Origin: Iphione sp. A-MEVVRFRX5
Taxonomy: Eukaryota
NCBI GenBank assembly: GCA_976226885.1
Contig: OZ320313.1
Span: forward strand, 171,430,001-171,494,000
Length of the DNA: 64,000 nt
Direction: 5' to 3'
Shown: positions 6,116 through 49,741 of the stretch, piece after piece
Layout of the letters: each line of letters opens with the position of its first letter
Position numbering within the stretch: the first letter of the stretch is position 1
Position numbers and translations under genes: made by a program
Notes under the pieces: model-generated
What the model was told of the DNA's origin: nothing
What the model saw: only the letters and a program-made list of their open reading frames with translations
Databases searched by the model: none

Positions 6116-6447
6116 ATGTCGGACGGTTCGTGTCGGCGGTGGCGGTACCAGGACGATCAGGAGGAGGAGGAGGACGCCGTCAGCCGGCCTGCCGGACACC
6201 TACTGACAGCCGGGCCTGTACTGACAGGCAAACCTCTACTGACAGCCGAACACATACTGACAGCCAGGCTTGTACTGACAGACAGGCACCTACTGACAGC
6301 CAGGCTGACAGCTGAACACCTACTGACAGCCAGGCTCCTACTGACAGTCAGGCTCCTACACATTCTGACAGCCAGGCTCCTACTGACAGCCGAACATCTA
6401 CTGACAGCCAGGATCCTACTGACAGCCGGTCCCCGCTGCCCAGGCAG
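6116..6447 (+). CDS. Candidate Homer variable first exon V1, largely made of an 18-bp minisatellite (LLTA repeats)
   Basis: acaATG ORF of 110 codons ending GGC AG|GTAGTG (phase 2). It could instead be a uORF ending 4 nt before the V2 ATG. Confidence 0.3.
6198..6428. repeat. 18-bp minisatellite (ctactgacagccaggctc), about 13 units
   Basis: Direct inspection. Confidence 0.9.
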
Positions 6448-6455
6448 GTAGTGCC

Positions 6456-6532
6456 ATGGCTATTGTGTGGCAGGACGTGCACGACGTGCTGGTGGCCGCC
6501 TGGATTCAGAGCCAGTTCCTGGGCAAGAAAAG
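6456..6532 (+). CDS. homer: Candidate Homer variable first exon V2 with GC donor (MAIVWQDVHDVLVAAWIQSQFLGKKR)
   Basis: Strong Kozak gccATGg and GC3-rich codons up to AAA AG|GCAAGA, after which composition turns intron-like. 77 nt = phase 2. Confidence 0.5.
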
Positions 6533-8142
6533 GCAAGACTTCTCTGTCCTTTGTATACCGTGTGTGTCCTACGTGTGTAGTTCGTCCCGTCGCCTCATAG
6601 AATGCATCTGCGAACTTTCGTTTACAAGTTCACATGTCGTGTGTACACTTTGGTTCATGTATACATATATCTATGTAGTTCTGATGGAGCTTCAGTTACC
6701 AAGGTTACTCTTTTATCGCACAGCCCCCTCTGGTGGAATGCATTGTGTTTAGGTGAAATAAATCTCCTGATTTTTTTTTTTACCGAGTTCACCTTTGGTA
6801 GACTACGACTTGAATATTGTATTGTAGTAAGAAACGAATGCCTGTCGAGACCGAGTAGACAATGGATGTCTTTTATATTTATCATTTTCATCGATCACAT
6901 GCTTTTAAGTCGCGTTGAAAAAATCACCGACGCAGAAAGAAACACACGACAGAGTAATTTGTCTGCTCATTGACTGGCCACGCTGTTTTTTTTTTTAATA
7001 AGTAACAAACGGAGGAAAAACAGGGAAGTGTGCACCATACAAACCGCATCGTATCATTTATGTTAGATATTATTACGGGGGCTTGTCAGTCAATCCCCCC
7101 TCCCTCCCCCAAAGGTTGGCGCTTCTACCGGTTTTTGTACGGCGACGTGCCCAATTCAGTCTCGCCAGAAAGAACGTACACACGTGTATATTATTTACGA
7201 CCGGTTGATTGCAGCTGTTTTTTTTAATGATAATTCACCCGATGTTTATCTGCAGTAACGAAACATACATAACGATGATGATGAGAGTGTGTCGACTTGA
7301 TTACTCACCCACCCACGTACATTTAGACCAAGTCTAGACCACATAGTGGTAGATGTGTTGTGTCAGTGAATTATTGAAGGTTTCGAAACTGACTGCTAAA
7401 TAACCGGCCTCAGATTTGAAGCCCTCGTCAGGACAGAAAATGGCCAGATTTCTTTAGTACGGTCCTCGTGCAGTTTACAGTTGATATGAGTCGTTAGGGA
7501 GTTTGAAAAAAAAAAGTTTTCCCCATGTCCCTTTGTGACCCTTGGTATAAAGAGGGTTAAAAAAAATCGGAGCTGCTGGGTGATTCCCCCCTTCTGGCTT
7601 TGAAAACAGATCAGGTCGGACAATGTCGACGTTCATATATCAGTGTAGACTGTGCAGCAGCGTCTCCTCCGCCCCCCCCCCCCCCCCCCTCCGAGTTGGT
7701 GGGTGAAGACGTTTGTGGTACTGATTACTGCCTGTTTCGGGGCTGTGGGTGGGGTCTCCCTAGTCCTGATCGTGCAACCCCCCCCCCCCCTCCTCTCTCC
7801 CTCGGTTCGTCTCTGTGACACCACTTAAATAGGAACATGTTTTTCGTCTTGGCCAACGGCCGCCACAGACAATCGGTCCATTTTTGTTTGACCGAAGGCA
7901 AGAGGCTGAACGGGCGGCGGCGGCGAGAACAAATGGCAGAGTGTGTCCAGAACTGCCTCCTCCTCCGCCACCGCCGCGCCACCTGACGACTCGGCTGGTC
8001 GTTGATCTAGAATGTCATCTATATTTAGCGGAGGAAGTGAGGCCAGTCCCCAAAAAAGGATTCAAGTAATGATAAAAAAAAAACTCAAGTAACCGAGAGA
8101 AATTTGGGGGTTGGGGGGAGATGTTGGTTGGTGACAAGCGTT

Positions 8143-8150
8143 TGACGTCA
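8143..8150. promoter_or_regulatory. Full CRE palindrome TGACGTCA
   Basis: Exact match about 700 nt upstream of the V3 ATG, next to a CTCF-like motif at 8175-8189. Confidence 0.4.
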
Positions 8151-8841
8151 TGTCGGATTAACGCTCATGTCGCAGCGCTCCCTGGTGGCGAGGTCAGGAG
8201 TTATTACTGACCAGCTCACTGTACGCTGTCGTCGTCGCCGTCGTTGTAGTTGACGGGAGATTAAACTCTTTCGACATCCCTGACTGTCAGGTTGGAGGAA
8301 CACCCCCGCCCCCCACCCTCCCCTTCCCCCTCCCCACCCTCACACTCCTTGCGGTCTCGTCAACTAGTAGAACCGCACTGGGGATGTTGTACCCCTTCAG
8401 TTGAGAGAAGCAGGAGGAGGAGGTGGTGCTGGTGGTGGAAGTGGAGGAGGAGGAGGAGCAGGAGGAGGTGGATCCGTTCAGCTGTACGTGTCGTTTACGA
8501 CTGACGCGATCCTACCGGGGGGTGGGGTGCTTGGGGGAGAGACCCTTGTCGTTGTATGTGGTGGAATCCCGGACACCACAGCCAAACCGTCCTCCTGCCC
8601 CAGAACCCCGCCAACTTGTGAACGGGGAGGAGTAGCAGGAGCAGGAGGAGGAGGAGGGCCAGTAGTAGCAACAACAGCAGCAGCAGGAGGAGGTAGGCTG
8701 TTACCGTTACCTTTCCTCGGCCTTCTCCTCGTCGTCTCCCCAGCTCTCCTGACACGGCCAGCAGATTGCTCCAGTGGCAGTGACATTGGCAGGAGCTTGG
8801 GGAGGGAGGGAAAGAGAGAGAGAGAGCTCCCTCCATCCACT

Positions 8842-8972
8842 ATGAGCAACTACAAGGACCCCCAGGCCGGCTGGAGGCAGGTACTCCACAGTCTGCCTCC
8901 AGGTGTCGCCCCCGTCGTCGCCGGCGATGACCCCGCTGACCCCAAGCAGCTTCGACCAGTCGTCATTCACAA
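8842..8972 (+). CDS. homer: Candidate Homer variable first exon V3 (MSNYKDPQAGWRQVLHSLPPGVAPVVAGDDPADPKQLRPVVIHK)
   Basis: actATG ... CAC AA|GTAAGA. 131 nt = phase 2. GC3-rich codons; CRE and CTCF-like motifs about 0.7 kb upstream. Confidence 0.65.
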
Positions 8973-10051
8973 GTAAGACTCAACGGTATCTTTTCATTAT
9001 AGACGATCTTTACGGCTCCTGGAGGCCCAGGGCAGAGGGAATAAATACACATAAAGGGGGCGCTGCTCGACAGGTTAGGGTAGAGGCACCAGGACACCGT
9101 CCGGGACAGGGTAGAGGCACCAGGATACCGTCCAGGATGGGAAGCAGCAGTTTAGATCAGCAGACGACAATTAGCGAGGAGTCCTTTAAAAAGCTAATTG
9201 TTGTGAATCAGAGCGATGTTATATCAGACTGCAGCACCTTTTAGGCCCTTTCCATCATAATTCAGTAAATGCAACATGAGAAATGGGTCTATAATGATAT
9301 TCCATGATGGTACAGCGAACTTCTTAATCAGTGATTTAAGGCGCATTGCTGAAAGTCACGTTGTTCTGCATCTTTGATCAGCGAGTCACGTCTAACAGAC
9401 GTGCTGATGTGTTTGTGTATGTAAACGTGTGTGTATGTCTGTGAATGTATGTGTGCGTGTGTATCTGTGAGTGTGTACTGATGTGTGTGTGTGTGTCTTG
9501 ACAGGTACAGTTTCATAGATAACCCCCCCCACACACACACACAGACCCACCCACCTACCCTCCCACCCTCCCTCCGGTCTGTGTGTAAGTTTGTTTGTAG
9601 ACGGTAAATCACACCGATCCCGGTAGGGGGCACTGGTTTTAAGTTTCCTTAGTTACAACAGATCCCAACGTCGATATCTCATTTAACAGTCTATCACAAC
9701 ACCGGCTTTCCGGGAGGCATATATCACTCAAGGAACTCCCTTATATTAAGTCGGAATGCCACATCATGGTGTGTGCTGGAGTGAGATATCAATGGCTCTT
9801 TGAGTTAACGGATGCGTTACTAAACTGGGTGTTGTTATATATAGCGTATAAATGGTGAGACATTACACCCTTGCGGTTGTCTTCGGTATGGCCTCTTTTA
9901 TGACGTGCACCCAGGGCGTGGGAAGTAATATGCTTTTGGTTTGTTCACGGGGGTAAAGCTCGACGATGGGAGAGAGAGAAAACTGGGTGAGAGACAGACG
10001 CGGCATGTGACAGTACAAACAGTGGTGATTCGACACCAAACATGTGTTCTA

Positions 10052-10102
<51 letters not shown>

Positions 10103-10219
10103 TGTAAATATCGACATTGCGCTATTAGTTTCAATCTCCTACCTTACTGTGTTGTTGTCTGGGGCTTGGAAATTGGGCTGGGTGGGGTGGGAGGTTGTTA
10201 TTTTATAAATGATGAGTTG

Positions 10220-10230
10220 ATGATGATGGG
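10220..10230 (+). CDS. Weak candidate canonical-type 'MG' first exon V4 (ATG ATG ATG GG|GTGGGT)
   Basis: The only ATGGG|GT I found upstream of C1. It mimics the vertebrate/Drosophila MG|EQPIF start, but the context is not promoter-like. Confidence 0.2.
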
Positions 10231-10869
10231 GTGGGTTTTTCTGTTTGTTTTTTTTCCTTCTCCAGCTGTATGACGTTAATAACTGGTCGTGACATCAGGC
10301 GAAGTTAAAGAGTTGGGCCTGTGATAGGAGAGAGCTTGGCGGAATGAGGCCACAGGCGGCGACGACCACAGGCCTGCCAGGAGCTGGGAGACAGACGGAC
10401 CAGAAATCTCCAACCCCCCCGACCACAGGCATGGTCTAAAGGAAATATTGGGCGGGCATCTTGAAAAGCGAGCTCTTCTTTATATCCTTGGGTGTCGCCG
10501 AAGTTTTTTTTGTTTTTGTTTTGTTTTGTTTTTTCATGGGAGGCGCTGACATAGTTCTGGTGTGATGCATTTTTCTCGCGATCATTACATATGGTCGTGG
10601 TTCTACACATCGTCTCGGTAAATATACTCGTATTTTCAATTTACAGCACGCGGCGGGCATACTTCAGGGGCTCTCTTTCGCGCCACATCTCCTTTTATTC
10701 ATCCTCGCATTTGACGAAAAAAAAGGCGAGGGGGGGGGGCCAAATGAACTCATCCCCCTATCCACAATGAGGAACATTCCTCAGGCTTGTAAATGTGTAC
10801 GTGTCCCTCTGAAACCAAAGCACGATGAAAACTACTTGTTGATGGTTCGATCTTGTTCACAGATCACTT

Positions 10870-11560
10870 TTTTTTTAACTTTGAATTTATATTTTTCTCG
10901 AAATAACCTGTTAAGGCCATTCATATTATATACACCATGGTTTGTTAGTAAACCGGTTACTCCACTTAAGTCCTTGTAGCCTTGAATCCTCCCAGCACCA
11001 TGCTTTCATAGTCAATGTAGAAAGCACAAAAAAAATTGTCAGAATTCATGTTTTTCCTGAAATATCCTGTTAAGGCTATTCATATTATATACACCTCAGT
11101 TTGGTAGTAAACCAGTTAGCCCTCTTTAGACCTTATAGCCAGCGGACAAGTTTGGAGGCTGAATCCTAACAGTGCCATGCTTTCATAGTCAATGTAGAAA
11201 GCACAAAAAAATCGTCATAATTCATATTTTTCTTGACATAATCTGTTAAGGCTATTCATATTTTACACACCACAGTTTGGTAGTAAACCAGTCATCCCAC
11301 TTTCAAGAGACCTTGTAGCCAGGGTACACGTTTGAAGGCTGAATCCTCCCAGCACCATGCTTTCTTCAATATAGAAAGCAGCCAAAAAAAATGTCCGAAT
11401 TCATATTTTTCTCGAAATATCCTGTTAAAGCTCTATTATACACACCACACTTTGGTAGTAAATCAGTCACCGCTCTTTAGACCTTGTTAGCCAGGGTGCA
11501 CATGTGGAGACTGAATCCTAACAGTACCATGCTTTCATAATCTACATAGAAAGCACAGAA
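10870..11560. repeat. ~177-bp tandem repeat, about 4 copies
   Basis: catgctttc...tagaaagca and ctgttaag...ttggtagtaaa blocks recur about every 175-180 nt. Confidence 0.85.
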
Positions 11561-26535: not shown

Positions 26536-26577
<42 letters not shown>

Positions 26578-27285: not shown

Positions 27286-27309
27286 TTTGACGAGATGTAA
27301 TCTGTCTAA

Positions 27310-29733: not shown

Positions 29734-29786
29734 ATGTCCGAGTGGTTCATGGAAGCTCTGCTGACCTGCTGCGACCTCTGGAGAGA
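29734..29786 (+). CDS. Candidate Homer variable first exon V9 (MSEWFMEALLTCCDLWRE)
   Basis: atcATG ... AGA GA|GTAAAG, phase 2, GC3-rich. The donor is weaker (A at -1). Confidence 0.4.
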
Positions 29787-32385: not shown

Positions 32386-34936
32386 CATTGGCCAAATGTC
32401 CCTGAACCTGTGTTCAAATCATTGCTTAAACTGTGGCGTTTTTCTGTTGATAAAGTCTCCTTCCTTTGAAAAGATGCGCTCGTTTTCTGTTGAAAGTGTT
32501 TTCATCCCCCATTTACGCCATGAATTTATCTACCCACCGCATCCCAAGGGTTGCTGTATCGCATACTGTTGAAGATCATTTAAAGAAACTCTTTACATTG
32601 CTTGATACCAGAGTTGTTCGTGTTAATGTACCTGACCATAGTCATGTCTTGTTGGTATCGTTTATTTCATTGACAACACTATTGTGACTGCAGAAATACA
32701 TCTACCACATTTTCAGGTACATGTGCCAAGTTTCTCCATTTTTTCTGTCATTTCTAGAATAGCTCTCCATGCCAACCATGAGATGCCATGTCATGTGTAA
32801 TCAAAAGTTCCTTATTGTGACAATATGGTTAACCAGTCATGCGTGCTTATACATTCCCATTCTGTATACCTTTGTGAATCCGATTATTTTTCTTCCCAAG
32901 ATTATTTTTTAAAAAAGATCCACGATAGGACATAGTTTATGCCAGTTTTCCTAGCGACTTGTGATTTTGATAATGGACTTCTCCTGCTTGTTAATTGTAA
33001 TGAAAGAAAGATAACTCCTTGTTCATCTGATTGCATTGCTCTCTCTGCACTAAACTATAGACTGTGAGATTCCTTGCTTGGATGTGTTATTACAGAACGA
33101 TTAAAGACTACACCCCCCGTCGCATGGTTTGTTGAGTGCAGTGCGAGTCTTTTTTTTAAGTGGGTTAAAATCTAGATTGACAAATAACACTAGATGATTT
33201 TGATAACGACTCCCATGGTTGAAAAAAACACACTCGTCGGTAAATACGACTTCCTTTTCCTCACCACCTTGGCGCCACGGGAACACCTGGTCTTGAGGTG
33301 CCGTTCCTCTGGCATCAGTTCAAGTTTCATTTACGTGGAGGTTTTCTGTACCAGGTATGATAAGAGCTCATGTTTACTTCCTTTGCTAGCGTATGAAAGG
33401 ATAGAGTACATAAGACTAGAATTGAATTATGTATAAAATGAAGTATTCTTTATANNNNNNNNNNNNNNNNNNNNNNNNNNNNNNNNNNNNNNNNNNNNNN
33501 NNNNNNNNNNNNNNNNNNNNNNNNNNNNNNNNNNNNNNNNNNNNNNNNNNNNNNNNNNNNNNNNNNNNNNNNNNNNNNNNNNNNNNNNTTACAACACTCC
33601 GTTGCTCCTCTCTCAACCATTACCATTTGACGAAAATGTTAATGGTAATGATTGTTATTGGAAGATGTGATATTTATCTGTGCCTAGGATTAATCTCAAA
33701 CAAGATCAACTGGTACATGTACATGAGAGAGATGTGTAATCATTCCCTTCCTCCTATACAAGTATATGTACTTGTACATACATATATGTAAATATGTACA
33801 TGTAAATATGCACATGTTCATCTAAATATTTACATGTATAGGTGTTCAGGTACATGAAAATATATACGTGTACATTTAAATATGTACATGTACCTGTAAA
33901 TATCTATGCCTACTTTCTCAAGAATGCCCTGCCCCCCTCCCCCGCTTACACGTATCACTGCGCTTTTACGGTCCCCCGCCGCCCCCCCCCGAGAGAAAGA
34001 TGCTGTTTACTATGAGGGTTGTGTCCTCAGCCAGGGTTGCCCCTCCCTTTGTAACCCCAATCTCAGGTAAACACCACCGCCACCACCTTGCGTCACGCCC
34101 CCCCCCCCTTCACCCACTGGATCACCTGAGAAGTACACGTGTATGTACATACAGATAAGGAGCGATATGACTTGATATACGCATTGCCCAGGTGTAAAAT
34201 AGCGGAATCTATTCCCCTTATATATATGTATATATATATATATTGCCCGTGCGAGGATGGGACGGTACTTTATGGGGACACGAGATGATGCGGCAAGTAG
34301 GGAGTAGTACTAATATTTAGGTGCAGGTGGCGCGACGGGCGGGGAATCCATGCGTTAAAGACAAACTGAGCCATACGCCACCACCACCAGCCAACAGGGA
34401 TAGACCTTGCTTCTCCTTCTCCTCCTTACCCGGCCTGGTTAAACCTGAGGGGCGGCCACTCCCATCTCTCTAAGAGCTACATCTACACTGGAGTGAAAGG
34501 TAAAGTTTCCCACCTGAGGATAAACCCAGGCGAAGGCGACCCGACGAAGACAACCCCGGGAGGACAGGATTAAATATCGACAAGGCGAGTGGACCTAGGA
34601 TTACTCTGCGTGGATTACAAGGGCCTTAAATAAAGCACCATTGGAAATACTTTCACTCCGCGTGTGTATTATCGCCCTCAGTGAATGGGTTTTTAAGTGA
34701 ATTTCACGGTGCCGCTACACAAAAGATACAGACGTTGCAAGTGTTTGAACGAGGCGAACAGATTGTCGTCTGCTCGGATTCTCCGTTTCGACTCCGTTGC
34801 TTAGCATCACAAACCATCAACGTTTTTTGAATATTCTCCTCTCATGTCCTTTTTAGTAGATGAAACGTCCTGGTAAACTACGTATAATAGCAGTATAAAA
34901 AAGGAACGGACGGCAATTATCCACGGAAGAAAAAGG

Positions 34937-34976
<40 letters not shown>

Positions 34977-37621
34977 GGATCCTGCATGAAAAATTAGATA
35001 TCCCTGCCACCAGGCGGCGCTGAGGTGACGACGGTAGTCGACTTTCAGATCGGCCCAGTATACAGAGGCGGGGGGGTGGGTTGGGGGGGGGTGGAGGAGT
35101 CGTATTGTGGGCGTCCCATGTGAATAGATGGCAAGGGATGTGCGCATTGTATTCTCAGGTCACTTAACTCTGTCATCAAGGAAGGCACAGGTTCGCCTGC
35201 CTCCTCCCCCCCCCCCCCTCCCTCCCCCCGTCCGTCTGTGAGGAGGAGGTGGTGGAGGAGACCACCGTGTTGACGTGTTTTCCGTGCGTGGTGGCGCTTC
35301 TGTCGAGATAGATGTGATTTTTAGTGCTGATCCTTCCAGGGGTCAGCTGTAGCCTATCCTCTCTGCGGCCCGCTTGACACGCTGAGACCCAAGGCCCCCA
35401 GCAAGCAAGCAAGGCCCTGGGGGGAGATCTAGACCACTACCAACATTCCAGCGGGATCAGCGGCTACTATATACCACCGCATACGGACCACCACCACCAC
35501 AAGGCCCGCCCGACTACGGGGGCCACTTAGAAAACTCCAGACTGACCAGCGCACGGGCTGTAAGGGAACCAGCTAACGAGGAGATCGTATCATTGGTGGA
35601 TTAGACATCCAGACCCGCTACAATTAACGGCCCAGTGTGTGCGTTGGTTTGTATGAAATCACGTCTGTGTGTACGTGTGTGCGTGCGTGTTGGAACAGTG
35701 TGTACACGCGCACACGTCGATCTTTAATTAGCCCACGTGACTAAGTTTTCACGACCTGGAGGATCAGTTCATCCTGGTACCTTGTTCGGCGGGCGGATTG
35801 ATGGATTGATACGGTGGGCTTCGTTCCTCCTGGGGCCCAGATTGTTGCAGACTCGAGTGGATTCGCGTTTACATGTAAAAGCAAAAAAAAAAATCGCGCA
35901 CTTTGTGAGCTTGCCCACCGCTGGTCCCCATCCCTGGACACTATCACCGCATAGCACACACAGAAGCCAGCAGTTGGGCGTGTGCCATCTCCCCTGAAGA
36001 CAGACGACCAAAAAAAAAAGCCGGCTGGTATTGTTCATGGCACGTCGGTGACGGGAGTGGTATATGTACACTTGTCGGAGTTGCTTTGGGGGGAAAGTCA
36101 AGTCCGTAGGACATCTCTGCGTCGTCGTATTCACTCATTACAAGGTCCCCGCCCAAGTGGTCTTCCTCGCTCCACGTGTTGAATATACGGGGGCGGTTTG
36201 GATACTCAATCGCTCATTGTGTTGAACTGCTCAGAGTGGAGCAGCTCTGAGTATCTAAGGGGAAAGTTGGACCGTCATGAACTTTCACCGCATGCACTGA
36301 CTCACCCCTNNNNNNNNNNNNNNNNNNNNNNNNNNNNNNNNNNNNNNNNNNNNNNNNNNNNNNNNNNNNNNNNNNNNNNNNNNNNNNNNNNNNNNNNNNN
36401 NNNNNNNNNNNNNNNNNNNNNNNNNNNNNNNNNNNNNNNNNNNNNNNNNNNNNNNNNNNNNNNNNNNNNNNNNNNNNNNNNNNNNNNNNNGCGTGGGCTC
36501 GCGGATTCGAGCCCCACGTAGATCTTGGAGGATCGAAGATCTAAGCAGCGCACTCACTGGCCTCTCAACCTTATACGTAACACCACTGAGAGTCAACGGG
36601 ATAAGATCTGAATGTTCAAGTAATGGCAGTTCACAGCGTAGAAAACTTCGACCAGTCGTGAAAGTTCAGGCGGAGGACACTACCCTGCTATGATTATCAT
36701 TATCAATTGATGAGTTTGAGTACTACTACTACTACTGCTACTACTACTACCACAGGTGGGGAGCACATACACCTGAGTATAGTGAGCATCCTGGTTGTTT
36801 TACTTGGATGGTAGAGAATCCTCTAGAACCTGTTTAATCATCGGTCATGGAGGCAGACTGATGTCTCATTGACAGCTCTGTCCGACCCACCCACCCACCC
36901 ACCCACCCACGCACCCACTCACCACCACCAGTTCTCACATGGGTGATCACGGTGAACTGTGTAGATATATGTATGCCCGTAGCCTGTGGGAGGACCACAT
37001 ACGCGGCTAACGCAGTGTGATACGCCCAGCCTCCGTCACGCTTCACTGGTCGTGTGGGTCGCCACCAGGCCATCGCCGTCGTCGCTCAGAGTCGTCGTCG
37101 TCATCGTCGTCGTCGCAGTCGCCGCCGCCAGTCGATCTTGCGTCGTACGGCCGGTCGCTGGGAGGAGGAGGAGGTGGATCCTCACACACTCACTACTCGG
37201 CTGACTAGTGTGGCCTGACATAGTGACTTGAGGGTCGAGGCGGGCGGCCGGGGGAGGAGGAGGAGGAGGCCCGTGGTGGCTTGGATGCGAGGTTTTATCA
37301 GCAGCAGCCACTGCTGCGGCCGCACACGTCGTCGTTAATATATAGAAGTATAGATATATACACCCTGTCTGCGCTCTGCTGCCTGGTTACATGCCCTCTC
37401 CCCACCCCACCCCACCCGTAGAGGACGGGCCAGCTAGACACGTCAAGGAGCTTTATCAGTCTCCCCCCCCCCCACACACACACACACACTCCCCTCCTCG
37501 TCGTCGCTGTGTGTCCCGACTGCGGGGAAGAGAGGAGGACACAACTAACCTGTGAAACACACCTGTGAAACACACCTGTGGAGCTATCTGGTTTGATCTT
37601 GGTTTGTCAATACTAGCCGGG

Positions 37622-37653
37622 ATGAGTGCGGAGGACACGGAGAACCCAGTGTG
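37622..37653 (+). CDS. homer: Candidate Homer variable first exon V10 (MSAEDTENPVW)
   Basis: gggATG AGT GCG GAG GAC ACG GAG AAC CCA GTG TG|GTGAGTA. Consensus donor, phase 2, at the 3' end of a CpG-rich patch. Confidence 0.6.
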
Positions 37654-37699
37654 GTGAGTAACGCCCAGCAGGGCAGTTCGACTTGTCTCTTTAATAACA

Positions 37700-38120
37700 C
37701 ATAGAACGTCTTCTAATGGGATGACACCTGCGATGTGAGTGTTTATTATAGTATCATTCACAGGGAAGGGGGGGGGGGGTGTAGTTAGAATGTCTTATAA
37801 TAGGATGGCCTGTGATTTGAGTGTTTATTATAGCAGGGTTTACGGGGAGGACGGGGGGGGGGGCAGGTTTGGGGGGTGGTTAGAATTAGAATGTCTTATA
37901 ATGGGATGGCCTGTGATTTGAGTGTTTATTATAGCAGCGTTCACAGGGAGGACGGGGGGGGCAGGTTTGGGGGGGGGGGGTTGAATGTCTTAAAATGGGA
38001 TGTGAGTGTCTATTATAGCGTCGTTTACGGGCAGGGGAGGGCAGGTTAGGGGGGGGTTAGAATGTCGTCTAATTGGATGACCTGTGATGCCAGTGTTATA
38101 TTATATTAATTTACAGGGAT
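37700..38120. repeat. ~85-100-bp degenerate tandem repeat just downstream of the V10 donor
   Basis: Recurrent tagaatgtcttataa...gagtgtttattatagc blocks with G-runs. Confidence 0.8.
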
Positions 38121-38451
38121 TTGGGGGAGGGGGGCAGATCGGGGGGGGAGGGTCGACCTGAACCGTCAGGGATGGATGGTATAGAGTGTTTGGACGTAGA
38201 ATTCATGTCCTCCGTGACTCAGCAATCATGCCCTCTCCTCATTCTCCTCCTTCGTCTCTTCGTTTGGCTTGTGGTCCGAAGCCGTCTCCTTCTCCGTCTC
38301 CTCCTGCTTCTCCTTCTCCTTTTTCTTCGCCTTCTCACCGTCGTTGCTACTTTAGACCAGTATCAACTTGTTGGATACAGTCCAACATCAGCGCGATGAC
38401 CTCTGCATCCCCGCTTGGCAGTACATGTATGTGTGTGTGTGTGTGTGAGAG

Positions 38452-38486
<35 letters not shown>

Positions 38487-39242
38487 CTGTGTGTGTTTTT
38501 ATGTATGCCCTCGTTCAGAGCGGGCAGCCGTGTGTGTGTGTGCGTATGTGTGTTTATGAGTGTGACCGTGTGCGTGTGTTCATGTTTATGTGTGCGTGTT
38601 TGTGCGTGTGTGCATGTTTATGAGTGCGTGTATGGGTGTTTGTGTGCCTGTATGCGTGTTTGTGCGTGTGTGTGTGTTTTAAATATGTGTGCCCTCGTTC
38701 AGAGTTAAAAGTCGTGACGTGTACGCGAGGCCTTTCAAATATGCAGTAGGATTTAGAAATGATATGGAACACTGATAAATGATGGAGCTATTACCTTTTT
38801 TGGATACAACACGGTACTGCTTGTTTTTTCCCTGTAAATTTCCACATGGACATTATTATCATCATCTTCATCATTATATATCCCTGGAATCGGTTCTGGC
38901 TGGATGCTATAGAGGTGACGGTAGACGAGATTTGTGCTCCTGGTGCTAGTTATACTCTGGAATATAGTTTACCGTAAATTCCTTTCTAGAAACGACCTTA
39001 AAGTAAGATTTATTAGCTCACGTGACCCCTTCGACCGGTAGATGCGTACGTTCAAATATAAAAGACGTTGCGGTGCATATGTCACATCTTTTATTTAAAC
39101 AAACACCTTTGGGTGCGTGCACTGGTTGTATACAGTGAGAGAGCGGTCCTCATGCGCTAGAAGGTTTTTTCCCCTCTAATTTCCCTTAATTTCTCTACGG
39201 AGAACTGCTCTCTCTGACGGTTTCTGTCTGTCTGTTTGTCTG

Positions 39243-39305
<63 letters not shown>

Positions 39306-39836
39306 AACACACACACACACATATACACACATGCATCAACTAAGCAGTGGGACATATCAATGAAGCGGCAGGACATTGTGATGTAATTTACAGGGAATTC
39401 CTCGTTGTATTCCCACTCAACTTTAAACAAACTAGGGCAACATGTCATATATTTCTAATGACAGGCCTTTTCCAAACATAGGCTATACACCAACAGCCTT
39501 CTAATCCCGAGTATGATTTCCTAATACATGAATGCATAAAAAATTATGTACTTTTTTCTTTAAAGATGTACTTTTTTCTTTAAAGACCACATTGTCGTGT
39601 CATGAGAGTTCTGTGGACTGGAACTACTTTCGGGAGACGTTTTTAATGTCACAATCACGAGGAGGGTTGATTAATTGAAGACCCACCCAGGTATGAGAAC
39701 GAGTGACTTGCCATTGAAAGGCCCGGCTCACCGTTATAACCTGGGCAGTGGCGCCCCCTCTTGGGTAACAGATCAGGTACTGCTAGCAACGGCCAGTACT
39801 CCGACAGTAATACATTACCTCTCAACCAAATCGTTA

Positions 39837-40185
39837 TGGCCCTGATCACGTGCCCGTATTTCTACGTATATCGCGACGGATCCGTAGACGTATTTTACCC
39901 ATAGTATAGAAATCCTGTAGACCATTCAGATGTACACTACACATGTATTTGTCTACGGACACCTTACGCATACGGATGTGTCTACGGACACCTTACGCGT
40001 ACGGATGCGTACCAACCCGCCGAGGATGGATTTTCTATGGCCACAGATGCATAATCCATAGGAACCAATGGTGAAAGACATCTGGTTTATTGTGCTACAC
40101 TCAGCAGGAGGCATTCTACGTCTCCGGATCCGGAGACATAATTTTCATCCATATTACATACATGTATACACATGTGATAGGGCCC
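39837..40185. mobile_element. Related MITE-like element (~350 bp)
   Basis: TTA-TGGCCCTGATCACGTG ... CACATGTGATAGGGCCC-TAA. Internal CCATAGGAACCAATGGTGAAAGACATCTGGT is shared with copies near 21980, 29050 and 30050. Confidence 0.45.
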
Positions 40186-40742
40186 TAACTGGGGGTAATA
40201 AGGCGAGTATACGTCTAGGGACATGTATTGAGATTTTTGTTAGGCTGGAATACTCGTTGATAGTACCCCGATTGACGTTACTATCATTTCCTCCATTGAA
40301 ATAAAAAACAAAAAAAAAGATACATCATCGAGTGTCCAGGCCAGCTGAGAGAGGACTATATTCCCCGCAGTTCTCACATTCCCGATACTGATCATAGCGA
40401 TCAAGTAAAACTGAAGGTGTGTGTTTTCCTTCACGTTTATAAGTCTTGTTTGCGGCCCTGTGCCTCAGGCGGAGCTAGTTTCCCACTCGATCCCAATCTC
40501 GAAGTTGACGCTAACAAACCGTTTTAATGTGGATGGTATTCACACGTTTGTCCTGTTACATACAGGGATTTTTTTCTCTCTCCCTTTTTTTCCCTCCTCT
40601 TCTGGTCTTTTTTTTTTCTCTCTCGCACCACTCCCGTTGAGGATCTGATTTTCCAGCTAGGTGTACGAGACACGTTCTAGTTCACTCAGTTTGTGCGCAT
40701 GCGCCAAACCAGCCAAGCGCCTCCAAACGGCGGAGGTCAGCC

Positions 40743-40789
40743 ATGATTTACTACGAGACTAAAAATAAAACTTACTACGAAGCTATCAG
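40743..40789 (+). CDS. homer: Candidate Homer variable first exon V11 (MIYYETKNKTYYEAIR)
   Basis: gccATG ... ATC AG|GTGCGC, phase 2. NRF1-type palindrome GCGCATGCGC at 40695-40704. Confidence 0.5.
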
Positions 40790-41329
40790 GTGCGCAGTCG
40801 TAAAAGTTTTCTCTCTCTTTTTTTTCTCCCCCTTGCTATCTTAACTTCTGTTTCGACACCCGTTATTTTAACCCACACCGTGATGTGTCGTCCCATTCCC
40901 CCAGATCGACCCCTCGTGCCCGCGGGCAGTCTGACCTGGGAGACCAGGGGCGGCGGGGGGGGGGTTGGTTATTGGTAATTGTGGCCACTAGATGTCGCCG
41001 TGCTAGCATCCATCATATCGGCGGATAATGGAATATATATATGCATGATCACGTGATCACCGCCGCGGGGGACCGGGCCGCCGTCGACGATGTATGTCTC
41101 AATCATGTGTAGTTGGCAGGAGCAGATATAGTGATAGTATAGAAGCTATGTTTATCAATCAGTGGTACACGTAAAACCCTGCGTACATGTATATATTTAT
41201 ATCTATATACATATATATATCGGGACGTACCTCAAGATGTGAAACTGTATGAGTTCTGTTTCTTCATTCTGTGTACAAACTGCATGGTTGAATCTCTCTT
41301 TGGAAGTGTTAGTGGACAGAAATGTGCCA

Positions 41330-41700
41330 TAACCAACTCTCATTGTAACCAGCTCTCACTAGAACCAACTTGCACCGTAACCAACTCGCACTATAACTAA
41401 CTCACACCATGACCATCTCTATATAACCAACTCACACCATAACCAATTCACATCATAACCAGCTCACACCATAACCAGCTCACACCATGACCATCTCAAT
41501 ATAACTAACTCTCACCATAACTAACTCACACTGTAACCAAGTCACGCCATAAGCAACTCACACCATGACCGTCTCTATATAACCAATTCACACCATAACG
41601 AACTCACATCATAACCAAACTCACACCACAACCAGCTTTCACTATAACCAACGTTCACCATAACAATGTTTAAGTATGGCACACTCTCACTACCTGCATA
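41330..41700. repeat. 16-bp minisatellite (aaccaactcacaccat), reverse-complement relative of the 31-bp array
   Basis: The reverse complement atggtgtgagttggtt matches the core gagttggtYatgg of 31775-32385. Confidence 0.8.
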
Positions 41701-42249
41701 GCAAACTCTCACTGTAAAAACTGACCAACATGTTCACTTTAACCAACTCTTACCACAACAAACTCGCACGTTAACAAAACTTCCACCTTTCCACCTGGTG
41801 ACCCGTTATATTTTAAGTCTTACAACTCTCTAGATCTAACAGTGATTTGCTTGAAGTGGGGTAGATTTCTCCAGCTCTAGATTCTACCTTGAAGTCAAAT
41901 AATGCCAGATGGGGGGGGGGGGGGTGTTACACCATGTTTCCCGGTTGTACTAGTTGCATATAGAAACTGGGATGTATACGTATTTAAAGAAGACCGCTCT
42001 GTGGGCAACCATGTACCAGCATGAATATTTCATTTAAAAATATATACATGGCAGCCATTTAAGTCATTATTGTTTTCCCAAATGTCGATCTACCTCCTGC
42101 TGTAGAAGTAGGGCTATGATTGAGTGGAAAATGATGTGAATTGGTAAATGGCCCGCAAATCAGCAATGGCCGGAGAGTTTATATTTCAAGAGGGGGGTGG
42201 ACTTCTCAGCAAGATTTTTCATTTCATTTCATTGTATCTCTCACCAGGA

Positions 42250-42550
42250 ATATATTCATATATCATCATGTCAGAAATCTTCCATGTCCTCTTGAGGTGA
42301 CATATTTCCATCTATTATTGAGAATTTAGAGACCAGAATACCCGGGGTTGTCCCCTACTCTTATTTCGGACATGGTTCTGGGCTCATTGTTTGCATAGGA
42401 GACAGAATTCTATACACCCAAGTTGTAGACCACTCTAGGTTGGGGCTACAGTAAATCTGTCTGGTCTTGATCAAGAATCCCAGGCCCAAGATTGAACCTG
42501 CGACCTCTCAATCATTGGACCAGTGCACTACCACTGAGCTAACCCTCCAC
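42250..42550 (-). mobile_element. tRNA-derived SINE with Deu-domain-like core (DeuSINE/BflSINE-like)
   Basis: The minus strand reads GGGTTAGCTCAGTGGTAG (A box) ... AGGTTCAATC (B box) with a degenerate cloverleaf, then TAAGAGTAGGGGACAACCCCGGGTATTCTGG at about 42335-42365, resembling the DeuSINE conserved core as I recall it. Confidence 0.55.
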
Positions 42551-43159
42551 ACTAGATGAGAGCTAAAAATAAAGAGGCATCAGATAAGGCCAAATAAAAG
42601 AGAGAGAAGCCCCTAACCAAGTTAACCCTACTTCACGACCCGCGCCTTGCGCTCCGCTAAGTTTTAACAACCGGGGATGTGATTACGAGGGGGGCATGGT
42701 CTTCGTCAGTCGAAGTCGTTTAGAGAGTTGATATGGTTGGTTGTGAGGGGGTTAGGATCGGTAGATCTTTACAGTGATTAGTGTGCGTGTCGCCGGGACA
42801 CAGGGCAGCTGGCTTAAGCTCTATACCTGGAGTGGCTGGATCGCGGTGGGGGTCGGGGGCCGGGGGGGGGGCCCACGGTGTGGACCCCCCAGAGAAGGAA
42901 TGTTACAGGTAGACCTTAAACTCCCACAAATTGAGGGCCCGAGTAGCGAGGCGTTCTGCAGCAGCCCCCCCCCCCCCCCGCCCCCCGCCCCCTCCAGGTG
43001 ATATGATGCCTGCTAAACGGTACCACCAGCTTCTCCCGTGAAATTACCTCCGACGGAAAAGGTCAGACCGACCTCTCGTTACAGTACCGAGTCGGAATAG
43101 GTGTTAACCATTTAGAATATAGCATTCCAGCGCTGTACTGGTGGTGGTTTGCTTGAGAC

Positions 43160-43191
<32 letters not shown>

Positions 43192-45133
43192 GGGGCAAAA
43201 ATTCTGTGAAGAGAAGTAAATTACGTGAATGTCGTCTGTTGTTCAGAAGATTTCTAATATGACCACTCATTTATTTATTTGTTTTATTTATTTATAACAC
43301 GTGTTACTATAAATTATCCTGAAAAATTCGGAGTGCCCAGTATCAGTGCACCTACACATGTAAACACCCTAGTCGTAAAATGCACGTTTAAAACTCTTTG
43401 GTGCTGACAGTTATATACTCCAAAAACCTTTCGACATTTCTAAGCATCCACTCATGAGGAATTCCAGAATCTGTTGAAGCAATATGAAAAAAAAGAAAAG
43501 AAAGAAAGCTGGCAGCTCTGGTGAAGGACGGTGTAGTGAACAGGTGATTTCTCCCCCGCAGGTCACCCCCTCCTGACAGTAATATTAGAAAGAGACTGTT
43601 GGGGGGTGAGGAGGAGAGGGGGGCGTAGGAGGGGTTTATAGTACCAGGTATGGGAGAGGGGGGGGCGTAGGAGCGGGTTATAGTACCAGGTAGAGGGGTA
43701 GACTTGTCGGTGGCTGTGACGGATGACCACAGTACGTGTGGAGCATCAGCTCTCAGCGGTACAAGCCTGCTCATGTCCTTCCTCCCCCCCCACCCACCCC
43801 CCCCCCCACACACCCTGCTCTGCCCCCCCCCCCCCAACCTCCCGTACCCCGCAATTCTCATTGCCTCTACTGTTCGTACTGAATCCTCCAGTACCTGCGC
43901 TATGGGTAAAGCGGCGGCGGCGGTGGCAGCCGGGGGGGGGGGGGGGTAGCCTCGAACTTTACACCTGCCTGTAACTAGCAGCAACCTCCCCCCCTCCCCC
44001 CGGCCCTCTCCCCTTCCAATGTATACCGGGTACTCTTCCTCCCGCCGAGTCCGTGGGTGTAACATGGCCTACCGTTCCCGAACCCCACCTCCCCATCCGA
44101 CCACCCTCCTCCTCCTTCTTCCTCCGCCCTATACTAGAAGGACTGGAGGTATATAGTGAGAGCGAGGAGGCGGCGGCGGCGGCGGCGGCGGTGGCTGAAG
44201 TGGAGGGTGGTGGCTGGCATAGAGAGAGCGAGTTACTCGTACCCACTCAGTGCGCGGAGGAGAGTCAAACTCCCAGAGCAACTCGGGGGCGTCGACGTCG
44301 TCTCCTCCCACCGGACGGGACGGTTATATCGTCGCCGCCGCCGCCGCCGCCGCCGTCCGGCGTACACGGAGGTGAAGTATATACGTACAGAACATCACGA
44401 CCGTCCGCCCGACGACGACGATGAGGACATGACGGCAGATGCACGAGAGGCGAGCAATACGCCGGGCCACCACCTCCAGCAGCAAATCTAAGGCATTTGC
44501 ACGCTGTTTTATACCCCACAAACGCCCTTCAACTTACTCTGGTGGAGCTTAGGATATAGAGAGTAGAGAGAGAGAGAGAGAGATGTGTGTGTATCTACCT
44601 GCTTATAATGCAGCTAGCGCCACTGCGCCCACCACCCACGGAGGAGGAGGAGGAGGCTGCTGGGTTAGTGTAGCCAGTGGGGGAAGTCACCTGCTCGTAA
44701 TAGTGAAGGTGAACTGCTCACTTCTGCTCGTCTGTTGACAGTTGACTGCCTCAGAGGCAATATGGAGCTGGATGTACCCCCAGCAGCAGCAACAGCAGCA
44801 GGAGTAGGAGTACACGTATACCTTGTTGGGTGTGTACCTCGAGAGCGTATTTACCGGCAAGTACACGGGACGGGCAGTTGAATGTGGGGGCGTTATCAAG
44901 GCCCACCCGTCGTCGTCAGCCTTGGAGTAGCTCGACTGGGTCCCCCCCCCCGTGTGTGGGCCCCCCTCCCCACACCTCCCAGCCGCTCTCTGTGTGTGGA
45001 TGCTGGAAGGGTTTGCTTATTGACAGTGGGGTGGGGTTACGTCGCTGATACTATACGAGCAGCTCGATATTGAGGTAGGTACCGCGAGCAACTCTCTCTC
45101 TCTTTAGCTCGTGGGGAGGGGGCGGTCGCCGTC

Positions 45134-45996
45134 ATGATGGCGACCAGCCGGGTGGAGGAGGAGGAGGAAGTGGTGGATAGCGCTCAGACGATCCCCATCA
45201 AACTGAACCGGCCGCGCAGCCAGAGCGTCAACACAGACGAGCGGCTCCACCGTCTCGTGCTCAGCACCTTCCGGTCACCGTCGAGTCGCGGCGCTACGCC
45301 GACCCCGACACCGACGCCCTGGGCGCGGCCCGCCAGTCAGGCGACGGCGACCGCGGAAACTAACGGCCCTCGGCGGCAGGCGGCGGCACTGGTAGCCAAC
45401 TTCCGGTCGGCGGAGACGTCGTCGCCGACGTGGCGGCCGCGCTCGCAGGAAGCGCGCGCCAACACACTGCCAAAGACGAACTATGTGGCGCCCTTCTCGT
45501 TCGACCCCCCGCCGCGCCTTCAGATGTCAAGGTCAGCCTCGGAGACGCTGGGACTGGAGGTCGGGCCCGTCATCGAGTGCCCCCAGCCCCCTGCCGGCCG
45601 CCGCTTGCGACCGTCGTCCTCGTCGTCGCCCGTCTTCCGGTCCAAGGGGAACTTCCCCCGGACGGCGGCGGCGGCTCGGCCGCTGTCGGCCGTGTTCGGC
45701 CAGCAGTCGTGGAGCCCCGAGGACGGCGCGCCGGACGTCGGCGGCGGCGGCGGCGGCGGGGAGGCGGTGGTGCTGCGGACCAAGGCGAGCAGTCTCCCCC
45801 GGCAGGGCGTCTCGGCCAGCATGTGGCGGCAGAGCATGCCGTGCGGCGTCGGCGGCGGCGGCGGCGGCGGCGGAACCATGATGGCCGCCACGTCGGCCGA
45901 CGCGCTCCTCATGTCGCCCCCAGGAGACGACCGGTCGTCATCGTCGTCGACTTCCGGTTACAGCTGTATCACCGTCACCAAGCAGGGTGTCCACTG
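45134..45996 (+). CDS. homer: Candidate Homer variable first exon V12 (287 aa plus junction Trp; disordered, S/P/R-rich)
   Basis: Long GC-rich ORF from gtcATGatgg that stops immediately after CAC TG|GTAGGA. 863 nt = phase 2, in frame with C1 (...KQGVHW-EQPIF). Confidence 0.75.
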
Positions 45997-46254
45997 GTAG
46001 GAACCCACCCACCCCCGTCCCCTAACCCCCCCACCCACCCACCCATAAACATAAATCTTGCGTGTGTATTTAAGGTATTGCTTCTATTTACCCTCATTTT
46101 CTTCATGGGATAAACATTACAGATTTTCACCACCACCGTGTGACATATTTCAATATTAGCCAGTCAAGAAGAACTCCCAGTGTTAGGCAGTCACAGTCCA
46201 CATGTTAAGTGCTCGTTCTCGGTTTTTCATGGGTTCTCGATGGCTTTTAAAAAG

Positions 46255-46545
46255 TACACATTGACAAGTTAACATATATCTGTAAATTTATTGATCAGAT
46301 ATTTTCTTCGGTATTATCTGGTGGGTAAACCTACGCATATACATTGACAAATATAGTATTTGGACAATCATTACACGATGGATAAACCTACACATATACA
46401 TTGACAAATATAATATTTTGATGATTGTTACATGAGAGATAAACCTATGCGTATACATTGAAAGATAGAATACTTTGACAATCATTACATAGTGGATGAA
46501 AGACACAATATTTTGACGATCATTACACGATAGATAAACCTATGT
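46255..46545. repeat. ~58-bp degenerate tandem repeat
   Basis: gataaaccta...tatacattga recurs. Confidence 0.75.
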
Positions 46546-47941
46546 ATACATTAAAAGATGGAGTACTGTGACAGTCGTGATAGCACTTTTGGCCGGTCAG
46601 AACTCCTTGTAAATTTGAACGGTTTAATGTGATCCGTAAACGTCTGTCTACATGTACGTGGACATAATACGTCTGTGATGCATTGTATTATCAGAGGCAA
46701 TACAAGTCGTCTGTGCACATTTGGCACCTGAGGCCATCTCTGTGTCTTGCATGTCAAACAACAATTCGCCAGCTCAGTGACAGCCACCTGACAGGTCTAT
46801 TGAAAGTGACCGCCTGTAAGAGTCGTGACATAATAACATTGTGACATCTGGGATATATAGAATATAAAAGTGAAAGTTGCTGGTAATTCACCTGTCTACA
46901 TTTCACTGGCCTGGATTACCTGAGAAGTGCACCTGAGAAAATGAGGAGCACTCAAAATTCACGAGACTCCGGAGTGCAACTCAACTATGGAAGCCCTGAC
47001 AGATACATGTGCATATATGGTCACTTGCAACGAGACATACGTACACACGAGTACAATGCAGTGCTTTTTACAGATTTTAGAAATTTATTATATTTTTGTT
47101 GGTAATCCTCTGTCGGTTTCGCCTTGTCACGGTGTTAGTATTTTATTATCCTTTCAAGTTTTCCACAATTACGTTCACATGTAGCCCGGCCAGTGACCAC
47201 AGCACTGAATTAGCAGCTGATTATTGCTTGCGTTGTGACAGCATCAACAGACCCGGAGTACTGGTCAGGTAGAGAGATGCTCGCGCTGGTACCCTTTTAA
47301 CTTACGTAAACACGGGAGTAGAACCGCCGAGTACCAGCGAAGCCCGCGTTGTAAAGGGTAGGAGGTCGGTGTTTGTAAAACGTGGGCGGGGGCGGTCGCT
47401 GTTTGCCTGGCAGAAACATCGGCTCAGTTCTACCCACTAATAATACTAATAGCACTTCTCTCTACCTGCGAGGCCACCTGGTGGCCGACGTGTGCATATC
47501 GAAGGGGCATATTGATCACTCACCCCCCCTCCCCCCTCACCCCCTCACCCCCTCACCCCCAACCCCTTCCACAGCGCGAAGGTGCATAGCTTATTGTCGT
47601 TTATGGCCAATTTGTCACTTCACATCGTACCAATATTCCCCGCCGTTAATTGATGGAATATACATTCCCTTCGTCGTTTCCCATAGAAACTAGANNNNNN
47701 NNNNNNNNNNNNNNNNNNNNNNNNNNNNNNNNNNNNNNNNNNNNNNNNNNNNNNNNNNNNNNNNNNNNNNNNNNNNNNNNNNNNNNNNNNNNNNNNNNNN
47801 NNNNNNNNNNNNNNNNNNNNNNNNNNNNNNNNNNNNNNNNNNAAAAGAAAGATAAAAGGTCTCTTCCTGGACTAGGTAGCGCAGCGTTGGGATATACATG
47901 TACACGTGTACGTTAGACGCATGCGCACACATTCCACGGAC

Positions 47942-48039
47942 ATGGCGCGCGGGCTTCCGCCTGGCGTCTATAAACACCCCCACGTAACCATGGCAACAAG
48001 TGACTTTTCCCGGGACCTCCTCCACTCAATGGCTCGCCG
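47942..48039 (+). CDS. Candidate Homer variable first exon V13 (MARGLPPGVYKHPHVTMATSDFSRDLLHSMARR; alternative in-frame ATGs at 47990 and 48029)
   Basis: Three in-frame ATGs lead to CGC CG|GTACGT (phase 2). GTACGT is also the donor hexamer of constant exon C2. TATAAA at 47969-47974. Confidence 0.45.
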
Positions 48040-49584
48040 GTACGTCACCTCCTGCCTACCAAACGCGCACGATCCCGCCACGCCTGTTTCCTCCAGTCCG
48101 CCCCCACCAGAATCCCAAACACCATGCAGCAGCAGGGAAGGAGGAGGTGAACAAAGCCACCTCTAGACCAGCTAACCTCCGTCTTCGCAGGGAGGAGGGG
48201 CTTCAGGTACCTCGGGCCTACTCAGTACTACAAGGGTACTGTTAATAAAAATAAAAAAAACCTCAGCTGGTGTTTGTCCACATGTCAGTAACAAAATGTT
48301 TCCGGGGGACACAGGTGGAAATGATAAAGATTATATGTCAATATAAAATGGGTAGAAGGTTATAAATTCGGCACAGTTTGGCACGACCGGGGGGGGGGGC
48401 AGTCCTTGCCGATCTCTGGTACGAATAGTCCCCTCCTCCAGGGTTCCCCCAGGCTCCTCCAGGTTCCTCTGTCCGGAATGACTCCGACGTAGCGAGGGGG
48501 TGAAGGAGGAAGGGGAAGGGAGGGTGTCTGATAGAGGGGGAAACATTCTATAGACTGACAGCCAACAAGCCATAGCAGTCTTTATACGTGTACATGTAGT
48601 CCTATCAGAACCAACGGGCGGCGAACGAAAACCTTGTCCTGCTGACGTAGGGGGTGGTATGGCTCCCTCTATCAGATATTTATATCACAAAAGAATAGAA
48701 TAATTAGACTATATAGAAGCCAGCGAACTCGATTTCTCACTCTTTTTTTTCCATGTACTATTTGCTTTTAATCGTGCACAAGCTCCTATTGGTGGGTTCT
48801 CTGATAACAGAATGGGTGGGCCATCTGGATTGAGTCGAGAGCCCCCCCCGCCCCCCCCCGTCCGAACCCTCAACACATCCCCCCCTCCCCCTCCCCACGA
48901 CCCTATATTTTCCCTCACAGGGTGGTCCTAAACGTGTCGATAGTCTCTTAAGACTCTCAGATGATCTCATATAATAAGAAGCCTGTATATACCGCCCGCG
49001 TTCCCTGATAGAAACGCGATCTTTATGGGCCGATATTAGTTTTTTTTTTACTCTCCCGTGAACGCAAATCAATCATATTCTTGCCAACAGCAGCGGCCTG
49101 TGGTGATAAATGTGACTCTTCCTCTCTCCCTCAGTACCCTAATAAACGAAGTATCGACTGCTACCCCACCGCACCCCTCCACCGGCTTCGTTTTCTATCT
49201 GAACATCTACTCCCTCTGTTCTCGTAAATGCTTGTTATATTTTTGATGTAATGAGGTTGCTATAGCGGCCCGTGTGGTGCTACCGTTAAAAAAAAAAACA
49301 GGATCCTCATGTTTTCATGATGGAGGTGATAAAATCCGGGCTAATTAAAAAAAACAAGAAAAGTCCTAGCACAAGGTGTGCATAACTCTTTATCTGAGTG
49401 TCACCTTCCTCCGCTCCCGCGTTGGGCAGTAACTTACGTCCTCCCCCGTTACAGCATTCTTTCGTGTGTTTTTTTCTTTTTTCTTTTTTTTTTTAGTTTT
49501 TTTTATCACATTTCTTTTATGACTGTAATGAACGTTGTTAACATCGGCGCTAATCCTGTGTTTCTCTTTCTCCTTCTCGCCCAG

Positions 49585-49741
49585 GGAGCAGCCCATTTTC
49601 ACGACCAAGGCCCATGTCTTCCAGATCGACCCGAACACGAAGAAGAAATGGCTGCCGGCGAGCACCCAGGCCATCAACGTGTCCTACTACTACGACAGTA
49701 CACGCAACTCGTACCGCATCATCAGCGTCGAGGGCTCCAAG
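49585..49741 (+). CDS. homer: Homer constant exon C1 (EVH1 N-half; equivalent to vertebrate exon 2)
   Basis: Acceptor tttctctttctccttctcgcccag, then G+[52 protein letters not shown], then donor AAG|GTGAGT. This is the Homer EVH1 N-terminus. 157 nt, enters in phase 2 and exits in phase 0, as in vertebrate HOMER1 exon 2. Confidence 0.97.

Follow-up and report, generated by a model that had tools for sequence, protein, structure and literature searches.

Candidate alternative first exons upstream of the Homer EVH1 exon in Iphione sp.

To our knowledge, the EVH1 domain of Homer starts two residues after the initiator methionine in every well-studied animal. Known control of Homer isoforms acts at the 3′ end of the gene, the type case being Homer1a, an activity-induced short isoform whose 3′ truncation removes the coiled coil. 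The canonical first coding exon holds five coding nucleotides and reads ATGGG/GTGAGT in Capitella teleta and ATGGG/GTAAGT in Lineus longissimus (slashes mark splice boundaries), where it precedes the EVH1 exon by 5.4 and 7 kb, respectively. Here we describe the Homer gene in a 64,000-nucleotide stretch of contig OZ320313.1 of Iphione sp. A-MEVVRFRX5 (GenBank assembly GCA_976226885.1, positions 171,430,001–171,494,000), called the window below and numbered from its first nucleotide. The EVH1 exon, its phase-2 acceptor, the coiled-coil exons and the intron position agree with the Homer genes of C. teleta and L. longissimus. In contrast to these, the five-nucleotide exon is missing from the readable window, and long ATG-initiated open reading frames (ORFs) in compatible phase are present instead. 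We judge the chances about even that the first EVH1 exon is fed by a small set of some two to four alternative first exons, each having an ATG and a CpG-rich island of its own. Splice joins to this exon are predicted throughout from phase, codon usage and conservation, read from sequence alone.

The closest parallel at this junction is the RefSeq 'homer protein homolog 2-like' gene of Argiope bruennichi, where more than one ATG-bearing first exon likewise leads into EQPIF across this junction. Its N-termini, which are annotation models only, are MTKDCAKMG/ in model X3 and an alternative 24-residue sequence in X1, X2 and X4. Whereas Argiope has two short N-termini, the present locus possibly has up to four, of which two are very long (164 and 288 residues) and one is conserved between species. 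The likeness to the protocadherin and UGT1A clusters would, on the best reading of the locus, lie in a number of first exons, each under a separate promoter, that join common downstream exons; unlike in those clusters, the variable exons here are few and unrelated, and would code for disordered extensions rather than for the main domain. With Homer1a the locus shares the principle that Homer isoform diversity alters the behaviour of the scaffold, but there a 3′ truncation drops the coiled coil, whereas the diversity proposed here is 5′ and adds sequence to EVH1.

Coding-like ORFs in phase with the EVH1 exon

The constant exon C1 (49585–49741, + strand) is the first EVH1 exon of Homer. Its acceptor has phase 2, with AG at 49583–49584 followed by a lone G and then EQPIF (cccag/G GAG CAG CCC ATT TTC; with more of the intron, ctccttctcgcccag/G GAG CAG CCC ATT TTC), as an earlier, sequence-only reading of the window had stated. 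The exon ends at 49741 with the donor AAG/GTGAGT. Its translation matches the Pfam family WH1/EVH1 (PF00568, E=1.1e-13), is 72–94% identical to the Homer EVH1 exons of other animals and retrieved 393 Homer-type proteins in a phmmer search. Among the 150 best EVH1 representatives, a glycine precedes EQPIF in 30, nearly all of them canonical MG starts; another 85, called as ORFs on the unspliced genomic DNA of other animals, have R-EQPIF, corresponding to AG/G. Because the AG/G or MG junction recurs in this way among the Homers of other animals, the phase-2 intron before EQPIF is ancient.

A blind ranking was made of 298 candidates, each an ATG-initiated ORF of at least eight codons with a donor, drawn from positions 1–49584 in all phases and on both strands, by a codon-usage score for which the constant exons of Homer were the sole training set. 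The four candidates scoring at least 8 are all on the + strand and in phase 2. The highest score (98.5) belongs to the ORF at 45134–45996, with GC contents of 0.63, 0.65 and 0.88 at the first, second and third codon positions (GC1, GC2 and GC3), and rank two (79.2) to the ORF at 13339–13829 (0.63, 0.60 and 0.82). A window-wide periodicity scan points to the same two ORFs, the former having the top periodicity as well as the top codon score in the window. The ORF at 24576–24715 has a score of 11.4, at rank four and above all 244 candidates outside the + strand, phase-2 class. That at 37622–37653 scores 5.7, or 0.57 per codon, at rank 7 of 298, a value reached by 1.6% of 10-codon stop-free windows. 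The codon signal of these four ORFs is frame-specific. For comparison, the constant Homer exons have a GC3 of 0.66–0.90 and GC1 and GC2 near 0.4–0.5. Between 14 and 49.5 kb, the periodicity and codon scans gave no further strong coding signal to which the upstream ORFs could be spliced.

GC-rich DNA has few stops, and other long ORFs overlap the 288-residue ORF in other frames, as they would if the upstream ORFs were by-products of GC-rich islands with no function. This explanation is highly improbable, as GC3 periodicity is lacking from ORFs of like length, whether they lie in other frames or within other CpG islands.

The four ORFs also have the setting of first exons. Each has a purine at position −3 of its ATG (gacgccATG, gccaggATG, gccgggATG and gccgtcATG among the four) and an in-frame stop 21–40 codons upstream, none reaching a gap, and each lies within, or no more than 500 bp downstream of, its own CpG-rich island. 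The 164-residue ORF (13339–13829) is inside a 1.4-kb island at 12701–14100 (GC 0.62, CpG observed/expected ratio 1.0, against a window mean of 0.75), and the 288-residue ORF (45134–45996) is in an island of two merged patches at 43901–46200 (GC 0.62–0.68, ratio 1.03–1.09). The ORF at 24576 follows an island at 22601–24100, with an assembly gap at 24071–24344 between them, and the ORF at 37622 lies just downstream of an island at 36801–37500. The sequence-only reading had placed many of its candidates in CpG-rich patches, and six are indeed in or right behind one, namely those starting at 6116, 13339, 24576, 37622, 45134 and 47942.

That reading was also right that the two longest ORFs end at donors, CGG/GTGAGT for the 164-residue ORF and CTG/GTAGGA for the 288-residue ORF. 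Joined to C1, the ORF at 13339–13829 would add 164 residues and keep the canonical glycine before EQPIF, the junction codon being GG/G as in MG/EQPIF. Its terminal GG/GTGAGT is the end of the canonical Capitella Homer first exon; chance would seldom place so complete a consensus at a genuine stop. The non-repeat C-terminal part of this ORF by itself has GC1, GC2 and GC3 of 0.64, 0.53 and 0.83 (p=2e-4). The 288-residue ORF ends in CAC TG/GTAGGA and would give TG/G, a tryptophan, at the junction, adding 288 residues that end in the conserved ...TVTKQGVHW. The weakness of GTAGGA as a donor was considered as an argument against splicing and dropped, the constitutive donors of this gene themselves including AAA/GTACGT and AG/GTACTT.

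Two shorter ORFs are less certain first exons. The ORF at 24576–24715 (47 residues, GC3 0.83) ends ATG/GTAAGA with a tryptophan junction codon and may be a third first exon, and the ORF at 37622–37653 (11 residues), ending GTG/GTGAGT and likewise giving tryptophan, is a weak fourth candidate. A further short proximal exon ending at 48039 is possible. The candidate concerned (47942–48039, + strand) ends CCG/GTACGT, the donor type of constant exon C2, and lies in a promoter-like patch, but has a codon score of −22.3 and usage that is not coding-like; if this exon is used, its start is more likely to be the ATG at 48029 (MARR) or at 47990.

The 47-residue ORF is open to a second reading, as an internal exon of phase 2 entered through ccag/G at 24574/24575. 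This acceptor joins GG/G-ATG in frame with the 164-residue exon, and the coding-like score reaches upstream of the ATG, to 24507. It is conceivable, but improbable, that the ORFs follow one another as exons of a single long 5′ coding region, for example 13339–13829 to the exon ending at 24715 to C1. Such a region would suit a recursive-splice-type site on the + strand, CTCTCTGCAG/GTAAGT at 16220–16235, the only exact match of its kind in the window, which with CGG/GTAAGT 47 nt further on forms a pair like that of a recursive-splice exon (16220–16277). The site is compatible with a very long + strand intron starting upstream of 16.2 kb. Against serial splicing, the ORFs at 37622 and 45134 have no good in-frame phase-2 acceptor, there is an in-frame stop at 45071, and every one of the ORFs has a well-placed ATG behind an in-frame stop. 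A strong acceptor-like site does occur at 45091–45107 (aactctctctctctttag/), 26 nt before the ATG of the 288-residue ORF, but it is out of frame with the 164-residue exon. Through this site, the 288-residue exon could also be entered from upstream non-coding exons.

Conservation of the 288-residue ORF and the case for a separate gene

The sole detectable relative of the 288-residue ORF is a 332-residue sequence (P0151) from a species represented by Logan accessions ERR14368245 and ERR14368249. It is an ORF call on two Logan contigs of 3.2 kb, apparently genomic because they end in a TTTC microsatellite. The two are 39% identical over most of their length, with the frame kept through many indels. 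Islands of conservation are T(I/V)PIK..NRPRSQSVNTDER, LSTFR, RANTLP, RSASE, FPRT and R.K.SSLP.QGVS, and both share the terminal block GYSC(I/L)TVTKQGVHW. In DNA, 8 of the 14 codons of this block differ, mostly synonymously, yet a single residue changes, from which we infer purifying selection on the peptide. Preservation as a protein largely refutes, for this ORF, its being a by-product of a GC-rich island. Both ORFs open with an ATG soon after an in-frame stop, and both end TG/GTA. A profile search for more relatives returned P0151 again and nothing else, and a metagenome scan returned none. The ORF has no Pfam match, and its ESM Atlas matches, at 0.80 or below, are uninformative. An AlphaFold2 model of the 288 residues alone has a mean predicted local distance difference test score of 45 and no secondary structure, and is fully disordered. 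Full disorder of this kind is commoner in extensions than in whole proteins.

A further, weaker connection concerns the region near 48 kb. A TATA-like box, CTATAAACA, is followed there by an RFX X-box-like palindrome, GTAACCATGGCAAC (47968–47997, + strand), with the ATG at 47990 at the centre of the palindrome. The pair CTATAAACA ... GT(A/T)ACCATGGCAA is present in both species, about 400 bp downstream of the ORF in the relative (contig L001, 2748–2776) and 1.97 kb downstream here, where it is 1.6 kb upstream of C1. By this position the pair weakly ties the 288-residue ORF to Homer in the two species. An initial view of the match as highly significant was withdrawn, its score being ordinary and not significant against a Smith–Waterman null for plain local alignment. 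A two-block 9-mer match occurred in 6 of 2,000 dinucleotide shuffles, which is suggestive for a test set after the match had been seen. A second X-box-like site, GTTTCCCATAGAAAC, is located at 47676–47690, where it abuts an assembly gap, and an NRF1-like site, CGCATGCGC, at 47918–47926.

The canonical ATGGG/GTRAGT exon, coding for MG, was not found on the + strand of the readable window. The single match, ATGGGGTGGG at 10226, adjoins an AT microsatellite and is in no CpG island. None of the candidate ORFs or donors overlaps a run of N, and every candidate ORF has an in-frame stop upstream that is reached before the nearest gap. In C. teleta (KB308460.1), the canonical first exon with its flank (GACTTCCGCAATGGG/GTGAGTGCT) occurs twice, at 8053 and 10001, 1.95 kb apart, the region of promoter and first exon being tandemly duplicated.

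Several observations weigh against alternative first exons and, in part, favour a separate gene. The last codon of the 288-residue ORF, TGG, ends in G, so that its terminus may be a genuine stop that mimics a phase-2 donor, as any stop after a G-ending codon imitates GTAA, GTAG or GTGA. Read as a stop, the end is TAG in the window and TAA in the relative, a difference that a real stop would show, although this reading does not separate donor from stop; read as a donor, it is weak by position weight matrix (PWM) in both species. At the Homer loci of Capitella and Lineus the ORF has no detectable homologue, which indicates that it is lineage-restricted and gives no synteny with Homer there. No EVH1 exon was found in the 912 bp downstream on the relative's contig, and no fusion of the ORF with a WH1 domain among the 150 best EVH1 representatives; contigs of closer relatives that carry C1 are too short to reach the upstream exons. 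The 164-residue ORF is partly low-complexity and has no homologue in the protein collection or the metagenome contigs. The statistics of the 47- and 11-residue ORFs are modest. Finally, any of six assembly gaps, or the sequence 5′ of the window, could hold the canonical exon, and the proposed introns, that at 48040–49584 excepted, cross one to six gaps each, over which scaffold continuity and order are presumed.

On these grounds, the 288-residue ORF, and perhaps the 164-residue ORF, could be an independent gene without introns, coding for a small disordered protein and ending at a real stop, upstream of Homer or in its first intron. The true Homer first exon would then be the canonical 5′ untranslated region and ATGGG, concealed by a gap in the assembly or lying farther 5′ than the window reaches. 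An ATTAAA signal 550 nt downstream of the 288-residue ORF, another 280 nt downstream of the 164-residue ORF, and the CpG-rich sequence on both sides of the gap at 47695–47842 agree with this explanation. We regard it as unlikely, though a serious alternative. A whole protein that is fully disordered would be unusual, and among 5.8 billion clusters there is no annotated protein of 158–581 residues like the 288-residue ORF, bar the one raw ORF call. The 164-residue ORF halts at a perfect GG/GTGAGT. Moreover, the top coding-like ORFs are all on the Homer strand and in the only phase compatible with C1, as alternative first exons would be.

The thirteen-candidate set

The sequence-only reading had listed 13 ATG-initiated ORFs ending at phase-2 donors and had proposed that many promoters place varied N-termini on Homer, in an architecture of protocadherin or UGT1 type. 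All 13 ORFs exist and are open to a phase-2 GT, but their number is at chance level. For the three phases of either strand, every GT in 6000–49584 was scored with a simple donor PWM and checked for an upstream ATG in open frame. At the leniency of that reading, which took donors as weak as GTTACT, GTAAAG and GTGCGC (PWM down to −1.8), the + strand holds 264 phase-2 candidates, compared with 243 for phase 0 and 228 for phase 1, and the − strand 274 in phase 2. At a PWM of at least 4 bits, the + strand holds 11 in phase 2 against 11 and 10 in the other phases, and the − strand 7–10. The set of 13 is not above chance.

That an ORF ends exactly at such a donor is automatic, because GTAA, GTGA or GTAG in phase 2 reads as NNG plus a stop; 73 of the 130 donors with a PWM of at least 2 give an immediate stop when read in phase 2. 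The absence of a stop at the junctions, likewise pointed out in that reading, is true of all 13 and trivial, only TA/G being able to make one. An ATG-initiated ORF ending at a phase-2 donor is thus a self-fulfilling pattern, which counts only where codon usage or conservation supports it.

All 13 candidates are formally phase-compatible and several CpG-rich patches are present, as an array of about 13 promoters and first exons would have them. Such an array is nonetheless extremely improbable. There is no excess over the other phases or the other strand, and nine of the candidates are repeats, end at poor donors or score neutral to negative in codon usage. The ORFs are not paralogous (164- against 288-residue ORF, BLASTP, no similarity, E=17), and the 700-bp stretches in front of the five best candidates share no non-trivial 8–10-mers that would indicate a common promoter element. 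With disordered extensions in place of a functional domain besides, the likening to protocadherin or UGT1 fails, and what is partly supported is an ordinary alternative-promoter architecture. Several promoters with varied N-termini have in silico support, from codon usage, islands and conservation, for two to four exons but not for 13. The remaining eight or nine candidates are chance combinations of an ATG and a GT.

Among the candidates rejected individually, 6116–6447 (+ strand) is a translated minisatellite (Tandem Repeats Finder array 6191–6428) with a codon score of −57.8, and the candidate at 10220 lies beside the AT microsatellite, outside any CpG island. The candidate at 16258 has no CpG island at its site and is better explained by the recursive-splice-type pair than as a promoter-driven first exon. 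A perfect cAMP response element palindrome, TGACGTCA, occurs in 8143–8192, and 17 nt downstream begins another phase-2 mini-ORF, which is not one of the 13 (MSQRSLVA, donor GAG/GTCAGG). The palindrome was discarded as a signal, one such element per window being the chance expectation.

The constant region and the proposed N-terminal extensions

Downstream of C1, tblastn with Mytilus Homer P0037 and another invertebrate Homer located further Homer exons at 51813–51944, about 52297–52400, 56633–56746, 57347–57502 and 59559–59744. The exon at 57347–57502 contains the coiled-coil block KKWE(I/A)ELQTLK and is 86% identical to P0037. With its WH1/EVH1 start, coiled coil and phase-2 intron before EQPIF, the gene is a member of the Homer family. 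In 49698–50697, right after C1, an 86-bp unit that includes the last 44 nt of C1 and its GTGAGT donor is repeated 11.6 times in tandem, and tblastn detects decaying copies of the end of C1 there. Tandem duplications at 56360–56702 (170-bp unit) and 59181–59591 (107-bp unit) cover the acceptor regions of two constant exons. Two assembly gaps in 57502–57909 break the coiled-coil part right after ...YKEESAR, and the constant region is incompletely readable. Scanning the window against Rfam and for tRNA genes gave no match.

With alternative first exons at CpG-rich islands, each transcribed from its own promoter and spliced to C1, promoter choice would determine which disordered Ser/Pro-rich N-terminal extension sits on an otherwise ordinary Homer of EVH1 and coiled coil. 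The conserved basophilic serine motifs of the 288-residue ORF (RPRSQS, RSAS and RxKxSSLP) suggest that such an extension may be regulated by phosphorylation. Our tentative proposal, which we hold at somewhat below an even chance, is that Homer here is made with promoter-specific disordered extensions of 164 and 288 residues instead of, or beside, the MGEQPIF start. In this proposal, GYSC(I/L)TVTKQGVHW would act as an extra strand–turn–strand of EVH1 or as a gate on its PPxxF-binding site, under the control of phosphorylation at the serine motifs.

A literature search returned no report of N-terminally extended Homers. Alternative first exons at this junction are already known in principle, and new here would be the length and conservation of the extensions. 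If the proposal is true, the promoter-selected long N-terminal extension of EVH1 would be a new form of regulation of a core postsynaptic and calcium-signalling scaffold, and the terminal block a new conserved peptide with a testable structural role.

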